DNA of 64,000 nucleotides, taken from positions 1,455,751 to 1,519,750 of the forward strand of contig OZ037773.1 of the NCBI GenBank assembly GCA_964035545.1, read 5' to 3'. Source of the stretch: Bugula neritina. Lineage: Eukaryota; Animalia; Bryozoa. Under the pieces are notes generated by a model. That model worked only from the letters and a program-made list of their open reading frames with translations, did not search any database and had not been told where the DNA came from. Both the position numbers and the translations under genes were made by a program. Shown piece after piece: positions 5,826-52,926 of this stretch (positions within the stretch are counted from its first letter, which is position 1; each line of letters starts with the position of its first letter).

Positions 5826-7355
5826 ATGAACTCTTATGTATTAGTTGCTTTATTCTTCCTTGGTAAGTTCAGTTTTAATTATTTATTAAATAAAATGTTA
5901 GTTTATAATTAGTGTTACCAAAAACATATAGAGTGTTTAATTGATGCCTGGGTGTGTAAAATCTCTAACAAGTTTCTATGGAAACATATCTCTTTTTAAA
6001 ATATAATTAGAAGGAATAATGTTGGTACCAATTTTGTGAGTGTTTCTGTTCTTTGAAAAAGGAAACTATGCTATTTACTATTTTAGCTGTGAAGTGTGGG
6101 CAAGTCAATTCGACATGAGTGAATTACTCTAGATCATCTTCTATACTTGAGCACTTGTAGTTGTTGCTTTCCATTTGCTAAACCTAGTATAAGGAGTAGT
6201 TACTGTTTTCACAAAAATGTGCGCTTTAAAATTTAATATTTGTGGAATAAAAAAGCATAAAATTTTAGCTGTCTCAGAGTTGGGTCAGACTTGGAGTTGG
6301 GAAATTTTTATTCAGTTCTAATTCTATGGAGTTTTACTTTTATTGACAAGAATTCTTGTAAATGTAATTAAATGAGATTTGGAGAGTTTTAAATAATTTG
6401 CAATTCTTATTCTGATAACAATTGTGACGATTCTCCTCTTTGTACAATAGCATTTGGTAGTATTCATAATAATATTCTCTCAGACTTGCATTTCTATCTT
6501 TGCACTAGGTTTTCTTTAGCACAGAGTCACATGTGGCACAGAGAAATATTCTGTATGCCACCGATATCTTCAACTCTAATCAAGTTCACCCAATGTGGCC
6601 TTGCCATAATATATAACTACTTGTTAAACTGCTTTTGCATGTCAAAACTTTGTTCCAAAACTTACAAATGTTTCTATGTATGAACAAGTTAAGTAAAAAG
6701 ACTAAAATTACTGAAACCGACTGGTTAAGCTAGAGTTGTGCTCTCCGTAGGTGCTGTGGCTGTTAGCAGTGGACTGCAGTGCTATGTGTGTGATACAACT
6801 GATGACTCTACATGTGATGACATGTACAGCAAACCTGCTGGACACCTGCAAGACTGTCCCCCTGACTCTCTTCTTGATGATGGCTGCTCCAAATTAAAAT
6901 CCACAGGAAAACTTTTGGGAGTAAAAGCGTCGACAAGTAAGTTCTCTTGGGATTACAAACTGCTGAACTTGTCAACAGACAACTCTCAAAAAAAATTTCA
7001 ATTTTAAAAATCTACACTTTTTGTTATTTTGAAGTCGTGAGAAGCTGTGGAAGTATTTATGACAACACCCAGTGTGCACAGAAAGACCGTGCTAAAGTAA
7101 ACCTTTTTGGCGTCAAAGGAGAAAGCTGGTCATGTTCCTGCACTGGAGAAGGATGCAACAGTGCATCTGGTCTCTCTCTCACTTTCCCTCTACTAGCTGG
7201 TGAGTAACCGTAGCAACCTAGCCATGTATTAATAACACATGTAGGCACTTCATTTTTATTTTAATATTTCTCTGCTTGTACCAGTTGGTTGATTTAATTA
7301 TTCCACACTAATATATATTTACATTTTAGCTGTTCTGGCCAAGTACCTTATTTGA
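5826..7355 (+). CDS. G1: GPI-anchored Ly6/uPAR three-finger protein, Quiver/Sleepless-like
   Basis: Exons 5826-5862, 6751-6936, 7035-7199, 7330-7355, all GT-AG and phase 1. MNSYVLVALFFLGAVAVSSGLQCYVC...C...C...GCSK...RSC...C...[32 protein letters not shown]. Signal peptide, 10 Cys with terminal CxC..GCN, hydrophobic tail, AATAAA at 7539. Confidence 0.9.
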
Positions 7356-8960
7356 AGTTCTCCATGTTATCCAGCTAAGGATGAACATCAAATACTGACT
7401 CTACTGAGGCTGAAATGATGTATATGATGTCTATAGAGTGTATTCTATTTAGTTTCTTGTATTCAACCGTGACAATTATTTGTGTATTCAATCTACTTTG
7501 TATTTTTTTTTCATTATTTTTAATTAATTTCTTTATATAATAAACACTTCATATTTCAACAATGTTCATACTAGAAGGTGTTGGGTAAAACCCAGAGCAA
7601 TTTACTTTCAAGATGTATGTCCAGCATAAATAATTCCAGTCATGTGTTCATTATTCTGTGAAGTTGTCCTCTTGTAAAATATTTGAATGTTCCAGAGAAC
7701 ATACTCTGAAGTTGAAGTGTAGCCCTTCAAAAATCATATTTTTGAGTGAGGTTGCCTTATCATATTAGCTGCAGGTAATGTGACATAGGTGGGGTTGTGT
7801 TGAGTGTTGGCGTTTCTATGTTAAGGGTGGGCAGTAACTGATAACATTGTTGCTTGTTTTGGAAGATACAACATCTAGCACTGGAGCAGCTATAGTTGAA
7901 TAGATTTTGTTCAAATGTGTTGGGAGAACCTAAAAAATATCTTACTGTCGTGCTGGTACAACACTTCCATCACATAGCTAAGATGGCTTTTGATATTCAA
8001 GTAGTTTTACAAGTGAACTAGCAGTGGATTAGTGCAACCCCCATAAGATCACTTGGTAATTGTTCAACTAAATTGTCTGACCTGCAGCTTCATCTAAGAA
8101 GAGAGGACAACCTAAAAGTATTGGATGATATAATGGCTATGGTCTACTAATACTAAGTAGTACCAGCACAGTCGTGCTTAGTTTGCTGGAGTTGTGGTTA
8201 GCGGACTAAAATAGACATAGCTCTATTAATTGTCTGTTTAATCACATTGGGCTGTGAATTCCTTATGCCCTTAATATATTTTCTAATTGGAACGTTTTTT
8301 GCTGCCTTGTGAAGCCATTATGTTTAAAATACTTAATGGAAATTGTTTATTCTAAACTATTTTAGCCCAGTGTGAATTAAAATCAAAAATTTCATTTTCT
8401 CAATATTTTACTAAATAAATCATTTATATGCTGGTGCAGCAAGTTTGTTTGAAGTGCTGTACTAGCGAAACTGAATTGTGACAAATTTCGACCAAACATC
8501 GGTGTCTTTTCATTTAATAAAGCAGTTCAGAAAGGAAACCAAACTCCAAATAGTCAATAAAATATATAAGCTATATTAAATTACGTGTAGATGCTAGTAT
8601 AGTATACAATCAACTGAATATTAAGTGTGCTATGTATATGTAATTGAAACTTATAAGCTTTATACAATATTTTGTGACTGCAGTATTATATTGATTTGCA
8701 TTAGGATGCTGTATATGGCCAGTATAAGTTGAAAATCATGTGCTATGTGGGACAGGCTAAACTTAAGAATACACATGTATATTTTACTAAAACTGAGTTC
8801 CATCTGAGATATGAAGTGAGAGCAACTATTCTTGATCATAAAATCTCCATACATAGCTTATTATTTTTGGTCCACAAACTTTTTAAATTGAACCGATTTC
8901 TTTAAAAAAGAAGCCACGCAAAATTCATTACTACAGATTATTTATGATACGCTCAATCGT

Positions 8961-9268
8961 ATATATTATACACTCAGTAGAATATATTACACACTCAGTA
9001 GAATATATTATACACTAAGTAGAATATATTACACACTCAGTAGTATATATTACACACTCAGTAGTATATATTACACACTCAGTAGAATATATTACACACT
9101 CAGTAGAATATATTACACACTTAGTAGAATATATTACACACTCAGTAGTATATATTACACACTCAGTAGAATATATTACACACTCAGTAGTATATATTAC
9201 ACACTCAGTAGAATATATTACACACTCAGTAGTATATATTACACACTCAGTAGTATATATTACACACT
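8961..9268. repeat. 21-bp tandem repeat TATATTACACACTCAGTAGAA
   Basis: Directly visible; shorter array in copy 2 (~29014-29130). Confidence 0.85.
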
Positions 9269-9680
9269 GAGTGCAGTTTCTCTGTAAGCTAAAGGAAATT
9301 GGGCTGTGGAGTTTTGATCATGCAAATGCACAAAACTATTTTGTTTTCTGTTTTTGTATAGCAGTATCTGATATTACATTGTATTTGTATAAAAAATAGA
9401 ATACACTATTTTGTGTTGTGTTGACTATTAGCAAGTCTTTATATGCATAAACATGAAAAACAGTCTATATATGGTAACAATTGAGCTTATATTATTAATT
9501 ATCTGGCAAAAAGAGGTAATAAGGAGAAATTTACTATCTAAATTCAAATGACTATTTTTGACAAATCAAACAAATTTTGTTAAACAAGACAAGAAAGCTA
9601 GCTGTAGCTATATAGAATATGAAAATATTATGAATACTTATTGCAGCAAGCTAAAGTTGCAAAGTAATACCAGCACCATT

Positions 9681-50849: not shown

Positions 50850-51056
50850 TAACCAATCAGAAGTTTGCTACAAAAGTGAGCCAACTGACCTCACCAGTCG
50901 GCTAGAAGTATGGAAACAGCTCTAAATCTATGCAAGCAGATTCAGCCAATCAGGTGTTAGCTGAACTAGCCAATAGGATCTGCTGATAAAAACTTGAAGC
51001 ATACAACCAGGTTACATAAAGTGAGAACAGCACCAGGTGTGAGCACAGCCAATCAA
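50850..51056 (+). promoter_or_regulatory. CCAAT-box cluster and TATA-like element upstream of G8
   Basis: CCAAT at ~50853, 50946, 50970 and 51049; TACATAAA at 51013. Confidence 0.5.
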
Positions 51057-51154
51057 CATCTAGCTAGGACAACTACCCCCCCCCCCCCCATAGATCTATT
51101 CACATGAGTATTTGGTAGAGTTATATTAGGAAGTTGAATCAGGAGCTTGACAAC

Positions 51155-52926
51155 ATGAACAAAACTATAGTACTTTTGGTTATTCTAGGTTAGTAAGTAT
51201 TACATAATATAATTATATCACACAACTTGTTTCTGTATATAGGTACTTGAGGTACTCTGTAGCCTGTACTGTATATAGGTACTCAAAGCACTCTGTACTG
51301 TATATAGATACTCAAGGTACTCTATACTGTATATAAGTACTTGAGGTACTCTGTACTGTATACAGATACTTAAAGCACTCTGTACTTTATATATAGGTAC
51401 TTGAGACAGTTTGTACTGCATATAGGTACTTGAGGGGCTCTATACTGTATATAGGTACTTGAGGTACTCTATACTGTCTATAGGTACAGTAAGTGTGACT
51501 CGTGGACTCAAATGCTACCAGTGTCTATCTGATGACTTAGACTCAGACTGTCAGGATGAATACACCAAACCCTCCGCTCACCTCAAGCCCTGCGTATCTG
51601 GTATAGCTGACGGTTGCTCCAAGTCTAAGATTCGAACCAAACTGCTTGGATCGAAGGTTATAACAGGTGAGAGACAGTGGCAGGTGAGTGAAAGTGACAG
51701 GTGAGAGACAGTGACAGAGGAGTGACAGTAGCAAGTGACAGACAGTGGTAGGTGAGTGACAGTGACAGGTGAGAGACAGTAGCAAGTGAGTGAGAGTGAC
51801 AGGTGAGATACAGTAGCAAGTGAGTGAGAGTGACAGGTGAGATACAGTAGCAAGTGAATGACAGTGACAGGTGAGTGACAGTAGCTGGTGAGTGAGAGTG
51901 GCAGGGAGGTTGAGGTTTAAGGTTGTACTAGAAAATGTAGACTAAACATTATTTGCAAGCAACACATATATAATATAAAATATAGAAGATATTAAAAATA
52001 TTTAAAGTTATCTTGTCTCGCGTAATTATGCAAAGTTGTTCCTAGAATAAAAACAAGTTTAAATGACATATGTCTATCAGATCTGTAATTCAGTATATTT
52101 GCTACAAATGCTCATTTTTCCCAATTTTTGAAAGGAAGAGAAAAATTGGCGTGCTTTAAAGGATTTCAATTTTTGTTCGTTTGCTTTTACCACTGCAAAA
52201 CTTTTAACCAGCTTGAAAGGAAAGATTACTAAAAGCTAAGCTCAAGACAACCTTTAGGCTATAAAATTTGATGCTGATACTGTTTAAGCAATATATTTTT
52301 ATGATAAATTACATTTTTTTCTTTAAAAAGTTACATGCTTTTCAAATCTTGCATACATCTTCAAGTTTAAAGAAAATTAGAAAAGCAAACAATAATTTAA
52401 GTTTATGTCTTCTAAAATGAAAGAGCCATAACTAAACAAAATATATTCACCATACAATACTATATTCAATGATTGCTTTATGTTTGTATAAGTTCGGAGA
52501 TCCTGTGGCACACAATATGGGAATACAGAGTGTCAAAACAAGGACAGGTCTATAGGAAGGCTTAACGGTGAAAGAGTGGTGGCCTGGTCATGTTCCTGTA
52601 ATGATGGCGATGGATGTAACAGTGCCTCTGGTCTCTCTCTTACTTTCTCTCTACTAGCTGGTTAGTAACTATAGCAATCTGTTATGTTCTTATACTAGTA
52701 ACACATGTAACAGTGCTTCTAGTCACTCTTTCACTTTCTCTTTATTAGCTAGTGAGTAACAATAGCAACCTGGTCGTTTTCTTCTGCGGATGTGTGATGG
52801 TACACTTTTTCCCCATTCAACAGCTTATAGCTGTTATACTTTATTATTTCTGCAGTTACAAGCACATGGCTAATTCTCTTATTCTCGTATATTTTAGCTG
52901 TGCTAGCAAAGCATCTAACTATATGA
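51155..52926 (+). CDS. G8: Ly6/Quiver-like GPI-anchored protein
   Basis: Exons 51155-51188, 51484-51666, 52493-52660, 52898-52926. MNKTIVLLVILGTVSVTRGLKCYQCLSDDLDSDC...GCSK...RSC...[34 protein letters not shown]. Confidence 0.88.

Follow-up and report, generated by a model that had tools for sequence, protein, structure and literature searches.

The window analyzed here, a 64,000-nt stretch of contig OZ037773.1 (positions 1,455,751 to 1,519,750 of the forward strand, assembly GCA_964035545.1) in which no N is present, very probably holds a cluster of QVR/Ly6-uPAR (LU, three-finger) genes of a bugulid bryozoan, built by repeated local duplication. The cluster comprises eight genes, named G1 to G8, that extend from the ATG of G1 (position 5826) to the stop codon of G8 (position 52926); their predicted products share a frame of ten cysteines, from which loops differing in sequence and charge would project.

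Gene models and architecture of the cluster

A six-frame motif scan of the window detected GCSK and CxC..CN-SASG eight times each, always as a pair, at 6.9/7.1, 12.1/10.6 (- strand), 26.9/27.2, 31.8/30.3 (- strand), 37.2/37.6, 39.9/40.5, 49.2/49.6 and 51.6/52.6 kb; besides these pairs, only one chance GCSK and one chance SASG were present. Gene models were built by reading the DNA at each exon boundary, with phase-aware searches for the short first and last exons. All eight spliced models have open frames, of 124 to 155 amino acids (AA), and every intron is GT-AG and of phase 1, in agreement with the exon lengths (31, 34 or 37 nt for exon 1, multiples of 3 for exons 2 and 3). The genes and two partial copies are located as follows.

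G1, 5826..7355, + strand: exons 5826-5862, 6751-6936, 7035-7199 and 7330-7355; 137 AA; exon 2 matches Pfam QVR (E=2.3e-5)
G2, 10233..12214, - strand: exons 12214-12044, 10699-10526 and 10264-10233 (exons 2-4); without exon 1, frame intact
G3, 26226..27414, + strand: exons 26226-26262, 26811-26996, 27094-27258 and 27389-27414; recent duplicate of G1 (93% AA identity)
G4, 29946..34203, - strand: exons 34203-34167, 31947-31777, 30404-30231 and 29977-29946; full-length partner of G2 (95% AA identity); each of its four exons can be mapped to B. neritina
Orphan copy of the leader module, 35276..35470, + strand: ATG at 35420; peptide identical to that of G5 and G7; donor intact; 986 bp upstream of the G5 leader
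G5, 36406..37782, + strand: exons 36406-36436, 37119-37301, 37466-37624 and 37757-37782; 132 AA, basic
G6, 38896..40863, + strand: exons 38896-38926, 39754-39933, 40427-40588 and 40838-40863; 132 AA
G7, 47259..50288, + strand: exons 47259-47289, 49099-49272, 49444-49605 and 50188-50288; stop lost in exon 4; 155 AA
G8, 51155..52926, + strand: exons 51155-51188, 51484-51666, 52493-52660 and 52898-52926; of all models, that of its exon 1 is the least secure (GTTAGT donor)
Pseudo-copy of the exon-3 end and intron-3 start, 52685..52773, + strand: inside intron 3 of G8

The order of orientations (+ - + - + + + +) is not that of a head-to-tail array. Loss of the stop in exon 4 of G7 adds 24 residues to its product, and a search for further decayed units across the window found only the pseudo-exon in G8.

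The mature part of all eight proteins contains 10 Cys together with GCSK, R.C and CxC..CN-SASG, which confirms on the spliced models what a first-pass annotation of the window had reported. The Cys spacing is 2, 5-8, 13, 5-9, 20, 8, 17-21, 1 and 4-5 in the eight proteins, with a terminal CN. That annotation had also described loops between the cysteines as differing greatly in sequence, length and charge; sequence and charge do vary (isoelectric point, pI, 4.4-8.7), with G1-G4 acidic and G7, as had been stated, Lys-rich, but length does not, the Cys spacing being nearly constant.

The models can be compared with a relative, P0004, a 132-AA protein encoded without introns on a 1033-nt JGI contig (L003), which is 56% identical to G1 over exon 2. 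The protein is colinear with the spliced models across all three junctions, and where its DNA matches the window, the matches start no more than 1-3 nt away from the exon-2 and exon-3 starts of the models; we infer that the contig is mRNA-derived and represents a spliced relative.

Family assignment and predicted protein features

The window proteins were compared with Pfam exon by exon, not as spliced sequences. Their exon-2 halves match QVR (PF17064, Quiver family u-PAR/Ly-6-like domain) over positions 1-41 of 86, with E values between 4e-6 and 2e-3. Of the five halves tested, one, exon 2 of G7, lies by itself above the curated cut-off (28.3 vs 27.3 bits). The full-length relative P0004 covers the whole profile (1-86 of 86) with 36.6 bits, against the same cut-off, and its feature neighbours in the ESM Atlas belong to sleepless/QVR, UPAR_LY6 and Toxin_TOLIP clusters. 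Matches of the exon-2 halves to PF00021 and Toxin_TOLIP were weak (E=0.003 and 0.04). LU/QVR proteins are recognized by 8-10 Cys in stereotyped positions with an Asn after the last one, an arrangement found in all eight proteins. The exon-2 matches, the full-profile match of P0004 and the ESM Atlas neighbours together bear out the Ly6/Quiver (LU) assignment initially proposed. When the sequences were aligned, MAFFT repeatedly superimposed exon-2 halves on the exon-3 half (C.D.Y... against CG..Y...); the halves of this LU domain are similar to each other.

Seven of the eight proteins start with 18-20 hydrophobic AA (8-residue Kyte-Doolittle maximum 3.2-3.6), a composition that predicts an N-terminal signal peptide; G2 has none. 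The sequence N-S-A-S-G followed by 16-18 mostly hydrophobic residues is likewise found in seven of the eight, G7 having the 24-AA extension, and by a composition heuristic this would be a C-terminal glycosylphosphatidylinositol (GPI) signal, so that the proteins are putatively anchored.

Relatives in the same genome and in databases

At least 20 such genes are present in the same genome (216 Mb), distributed over three or more clusters and one further locus. Eight genes of three exons each, with the tail inside exon 3, lie at C9:2.91-2.95 Mb; C2 has three complete genes and the exon 3 of a fourth, and one or two genes are found at C9:0.2 Mb.

The closest database protein is EB796_008192 of Bugula neritina (84% identity over exon 2), and a B. 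neritina contig (VXIV02001317.1) is syntenic with the window at ~80% nucleotide identity; because of these identities, the window genome is judged to be that of a bugulid near to, but distinct from, the sequenced B. neritina assembly (dS, the divergence at synonymous sites, about 0.2). In B. neritina all four exons are intact in two G1-type genes and one G4-type gene. The models of EB796_008191 and EB796_008192 (L001/L002) are incorrect, being truncated or reading into introns, and four-exon models suit both loci with intact frames. In a tree, the G2/G4 pair joins BnG4b and G1/G3 group with BnG1a/b; the tree of 25 members was poorly resolved below ortholog pairs and speaks neither for nor against a single clade of the eight genes of the window.

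Word-based protein searches retrieved only P0004 itself when it was the query, gave no match for the exon-3 frame of G1 and yielded no orthologs of G5-G8. An exact-pattern scan of metagenomes for the conserved island (see below) also gave no match.

A duplicated two-gene block and the truncation of G2

Two genes of the cluster were copied together, and an rDNA (ribosomal DNA) unit and retroelement sequences lie between the copies:

Block A, 3785..12439: 8.6-kb two-gene block with G1 and G2
Spacer replacing the 5' end of G2, 12440..24119: transposase-like fragment, TA repeats, rearranged rDNA unit and two reverse-transcriptase open reading frames (ORFs)
28S of the rearranged rDNA, 14328-19547, - strand: split by a reverse-transcriptase ORF, 15854-17665
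5.8S of the rearranged rDNA, 20049-20201, - strand
18S of the rearranged rDNA, 20439-22132, + strand
Second reverse-transcriptase ORF, 21980-23350, + strand: starts inside the 3' end of 18S
Block A', 24120..32182: with G3 and the greater part of G4; identity to A 86-95% (about 92%)

At the protein level G1 and G3 are 93% identical and G2 and G4 95%, and the duplication of the two-gene block is judged to be recent. Since block A is duplicated as A', the window holds six distinct paralogs; the array of eight units with four shared exons described in the first-pass annotation stands as regards the phase-1 introns of all eight genes, but not in the number of distinct members, nor for G2, which has exons 2-4 only.

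Homology between the two blocks ends at position 12439. Exon 1 of G4 (ATG at 34203) occurs only once in the window, and the 4 kb upstream of G2 contain no hydrophobic start exon in phase 1; G2 is thus truncated at its 5' end and, in spite of an intact frame, probably a pseudogene. The rDNA/retroelement stretch (13100-23350) is situated between the two Ly6 blocks, at the expected site of G2 exon 1. An open frame at the break of the duplicated block (12452-12859, - strand) has no Pfam match at E<=0.001; it carries a motif (ITGDETW...) which we take to be that of a mariner-like transposase. Long minisatellite arrays, whose periods are 23, 9 and 14-15 nt, are found at 3714-4420 and 23992-24750, at 3152-3610 and at 62734-64000, respectively; the 23-nt array sits where each copy of the duplicated block begins.

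Two haplotypes assembled in tandem would produce a similar picture, and the locus would then have six genes. The two copies are indeed close (about 92%), and elsewhere in the assembly a 20-kb stretch with 200 N contains two identical copies of a family member (C9:205000-205500 and 221000-221500, L010 and L011, 16 kb apart), which may themselves be an assembly duplication. However, the blocks of the window differ by ~8% with many indels, their flanks are different, only one of them adjoins the rDNA insert and is without exon 1, no N interrupts the sequence, and the same block occurs at least three times in independent assemblies of B. neritina. We thus consider an assembly artefact extremely unlikely.

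Mosaic conservation among the paralogs

At the DNA level, alignable sequence among distinct paralogs is limited to a few islands. One of them, 87-95% alike among G5, G6, G7 and the orphan copy, consists of the leader exon and 130-300 nt of its 5' flank; a second, conserved in the eight genes, comprises the final ~75 nt of exon 3 and ~27 nt of intron 3, and exon 4 with its 3' flank also aligns between G5 and G6. The leader and exon-3-end islands are confined to this cluster. Within exon 3, a segment of 54-57 nt (SCSCT(D)G(D/E)...) is 74-95% identical among paralogs, while the remaining mature coding sequence reaches 42-57%. In this segment G1 and G3 share 51 of 54 nt and the indel state with G6, whereas the B. 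neritina orthologs of G1/G3 carry the indel state of G4/G8 instead. Gene conversion among the members of the cluster most likely keeps the leader and tail modules alike; constraint at the nucleotide level, for instance by the splicing of the 26-nt last exon, could instead explain the conserved islands.

In all eight genes the reading frame meets a stop one or two codons after the exon-3 donor, thus retention of intron 3 would give a protein with a shortened tail; that this might switch the product from an anchored to a secreted form is speculation on our part.

Substitution rates, paralog age and copy number

Synonymous sites in the mature part of the distinct paralogs are saturated (proportion of synonymous differences, pS, 0.62-0.90; non-synonymous divergence, dN, 0.44-0.83), while those of the tail and leader are not. 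Because of the saturation in the mature part we judge the distinct paralogs to be old, and the variability of the loops need not reflect recent rapid change.

The ratio of non-synonymous to synonymous divergence (dN/dS) was calculated between the window and B. neritina for two ortholog groups (65 changes), separating 27 framework columns from 71 variable ones. For the whole mature domain the values range from 0.5 to 0.96. The framework columns gave 0-0.08, pooled 0.01 (p=1.5e-8 against neutrality), and the variable columns 0.9-2.3 depending on method and pair, pooled 1.25 (p=0.77 against neutrality), a ratio biased upward by the choice of these columns for varying among paralogs; the loop ratio is not significantly above 1. 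Surrounding non-coding DNA differs by about 19% between the species, and the loops change at about the same rate. Strong purifying selection, as far as these comparisons go, acts on the Cys frame, and drift of the loops is close to the neutral rate, in line with the constant frame and variable loops noted at first. In G1 and G4 compared with B. neritina, synonymous changes were denser in the 27 framework codons (12 in ~30 sites) than in the 71 loop codons (12.5 in ~89), probably an artefact of transition bias at two-fold codons.

The G1/G4-type block is present at least three times in B. neritina and twice here; one of the B. neritina G4-type copies lacks exons 3 and 4, and each species has one truncated copy. 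These counts support local duplication with gain and loss of copies, as suggested in the first-pass annotation. Block copies are 92-93% alike within each species and about 80% between them, and because copies are closer within than between species, the pattern suggests that the block was duplicated after the split or that its copies evolved in concert.

We asked whether the cluster could be an adaptively diversified repertoire for recognition, immunity or channel modulation, with positive selection on the loops and a constant leader and anchor. Such a reading would account for the contrast between loop and frame ratios (0.9-2.3 vs 0-0.08), the span of pI from 4.4 to 8.7, the different copy number in congeners and the conservation of leader and tail DNA around a divergent body, as in toxin-like families. 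Nevertheless, the pooled loop ratio does not differ from 1 even with its upward bias, the distinct paralogs are old by their pS, each gene compared has a clear ortholog group in B. neritina, and loop lengths are fixed. The dN/dS values do not demonstrate adaptive diversification, and we hold this reading, which the first-pass annotation had put forward, to be unlikely; positive selection is not supported by the loop ratio (p=0.77) and the age of the paralogs.

A more novel reading, which we consider highly unlikely, is a cassette-like recognition repertoire of a colonial animal, in which conversion keeps the leader, the GPI tail and the intron-3 start uniform, the loops evolve no slower than neutrally and sister species differ through turnover of copy number. 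If it were true, possible uses would be self/non-self recognition of the colony, larval settlement or symbiont recognition.

Expression data and points against the assignment

The sole public run in which the stretch is represented (X1) has coverage across the introns and no splice joints, and is DNA-like. In this run, high-copy repeats at 40047-40281 (intron 2 of G6) and 35634-35825 reach a contig depth 20-30x that of their flanks, with many loose ends, and are probably fragments of transposable elements. At 39628-39739, just upstream of G6 exon 2, ten variants occur at about half depth, which looks like a second haplotype.

Several results weigh against a cluster of working QVR/Ly6 genes. 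The exon-3 half of the domain gives no Pfam match by itself. A PDB search by sequence returned no matching chain, and the single-sequence AlphaFold2 model of P0004 was unusable (predicted local distance difference test, pLDDT, 40.8) and did not confirm the fold. The signal peptide and the GPI signal were judged from composition alone. Run X1, which behaves as DNA, contains no RNA evidence for any of the eight genes, and a loop dN/dS near 1 also fits decaying genes.

The last two points would agree with most copies being unexpressed relics that drift to pseudogenes, the variability of the loops reflecting relaxed constraint, as would the missing exon 1 of G2, the lost stop of G7, the orphan leader and the pseudo-exon. 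But all eight genes keep their open frames, 10 Cys and every splice site, their framework ratio is about 0.01 (p=1.5e-8), the B. neritina orthologs are intact at a dS of about 0.2, and one relative appears as a spliced, mRNA-like contig. Decay of most copies is accordingly very unlikely.

Proposed mode of action

Gene structure, family membership, synteny and substitution rates have been presented above; from what is known of the family, a mode of action can be sketched in which GPI anchoring, fold, partners and expression are inferred. Each gene would encode a protein of about 135 AA, its signal peptide encoded partly by exon 1 and partly by the beginning of exon 2, with a domain of about 92-96 AA whose 10 Cys should form, by family, five disulfides and three loops. 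A C-terminal GPI signal would follow, made up of small residues at CN-SASG and some 15 hydrophobic residues interrupted by intron 3. The signal peptide would direct the product into the endoplasmic reticulum, where the five disulfides may form; GPI transamidase would cut near CN/SASG, and the domain would be displayed on the outer membrane leaflet, its loops binding partner proteins. As to the history of the cluster, the G1/G2 block was duplicated, G2 truncated by the rDNA/retroelement rearrangement and the stop of G7 lost.

Comparison with known systems

Clusters that arise by local duplication are the rule in this family. Clustered Ly6 genes are well described in Drosophila, where many of the 36 members are clustered with a conserved exon structure and arose by tandem duplication (PMC4476152), and for two bryozoan genomes a survey based on annotation gives a total of 82 LU proteins (PMC13719153). 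For both reasons, and as the cluster is one of at least three in its genome, it is not the undescribed system for which the earlier annotation had thought it a candidate; the genome has several Ly6/QVR clusters, of which this is an ordinary lineage-specific one, and it does not represent a new kind of system. What it offers is a Ly6/QVR cluster with correct gene models from Bryozoa, where such proteins have so far only been counted, and a small, clean case in which constraint, drift and gene conversion can be told apart in a three-finger family, with a frozen frame, near-neutral loops and a homogenised leader and tail.

The closest likeness is to the insect Quiver/Sleepless proteins (PF17064; qvr/sss, boudin, coiled, crooked, twit, bero). 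Fly members of the family modulate Shaker channels and nicotinic receptors via defined parts of the protein (PMC4735452), and others are needed for septate junctions (PMC3058042). Shared features are a 10-Cys LU domain ending in CN, a signal peptide and GPI-type tail (both predicted here) in a protein of about 130-150 AA, QVR as the best Pfam family for both the exon-2 pieces and the full-length relative, and clustered genes whose conserved exon structure derives from tandem duplication (PMC4476152). Unlike them, the present genes belong to a bryozoan and show no one-to-one orthology to a named fly gene; an extra phase-1 intron, which the genes at C9:2.91 Mb do not have, splits the predicted GPI tail here, and the DNA of the leader and tail modules is homogenised.

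Vertebrate Ly6/uPAR clusters (lynx1/SLURP, CD59, mouse Ly6a) also consist of tandemly arranged genes for small three-finger proteins, GPI-anchored or secreted, whose loops carry the binding specificity, features that are predicted for the proteins described here; the weak PF00021 and Toxin_TOLIP matches of single exon-2 halves, however, indicate likeness at the superfamily level only. Finally, elapid three-finger toxins and other families that pair a conserved signal with a variable mature part have in common with this cluster a conserved leader, divergent loops on a disulfide frame and tandem arrays with birth-and-death evolution. They differ from it in that accelerated evolution is not demonstrated here and nothing suggests use in venom or a secretory gland; the bryozoan proteins carry a predicted GPI tail, and so are probably anchored rather than secreted.

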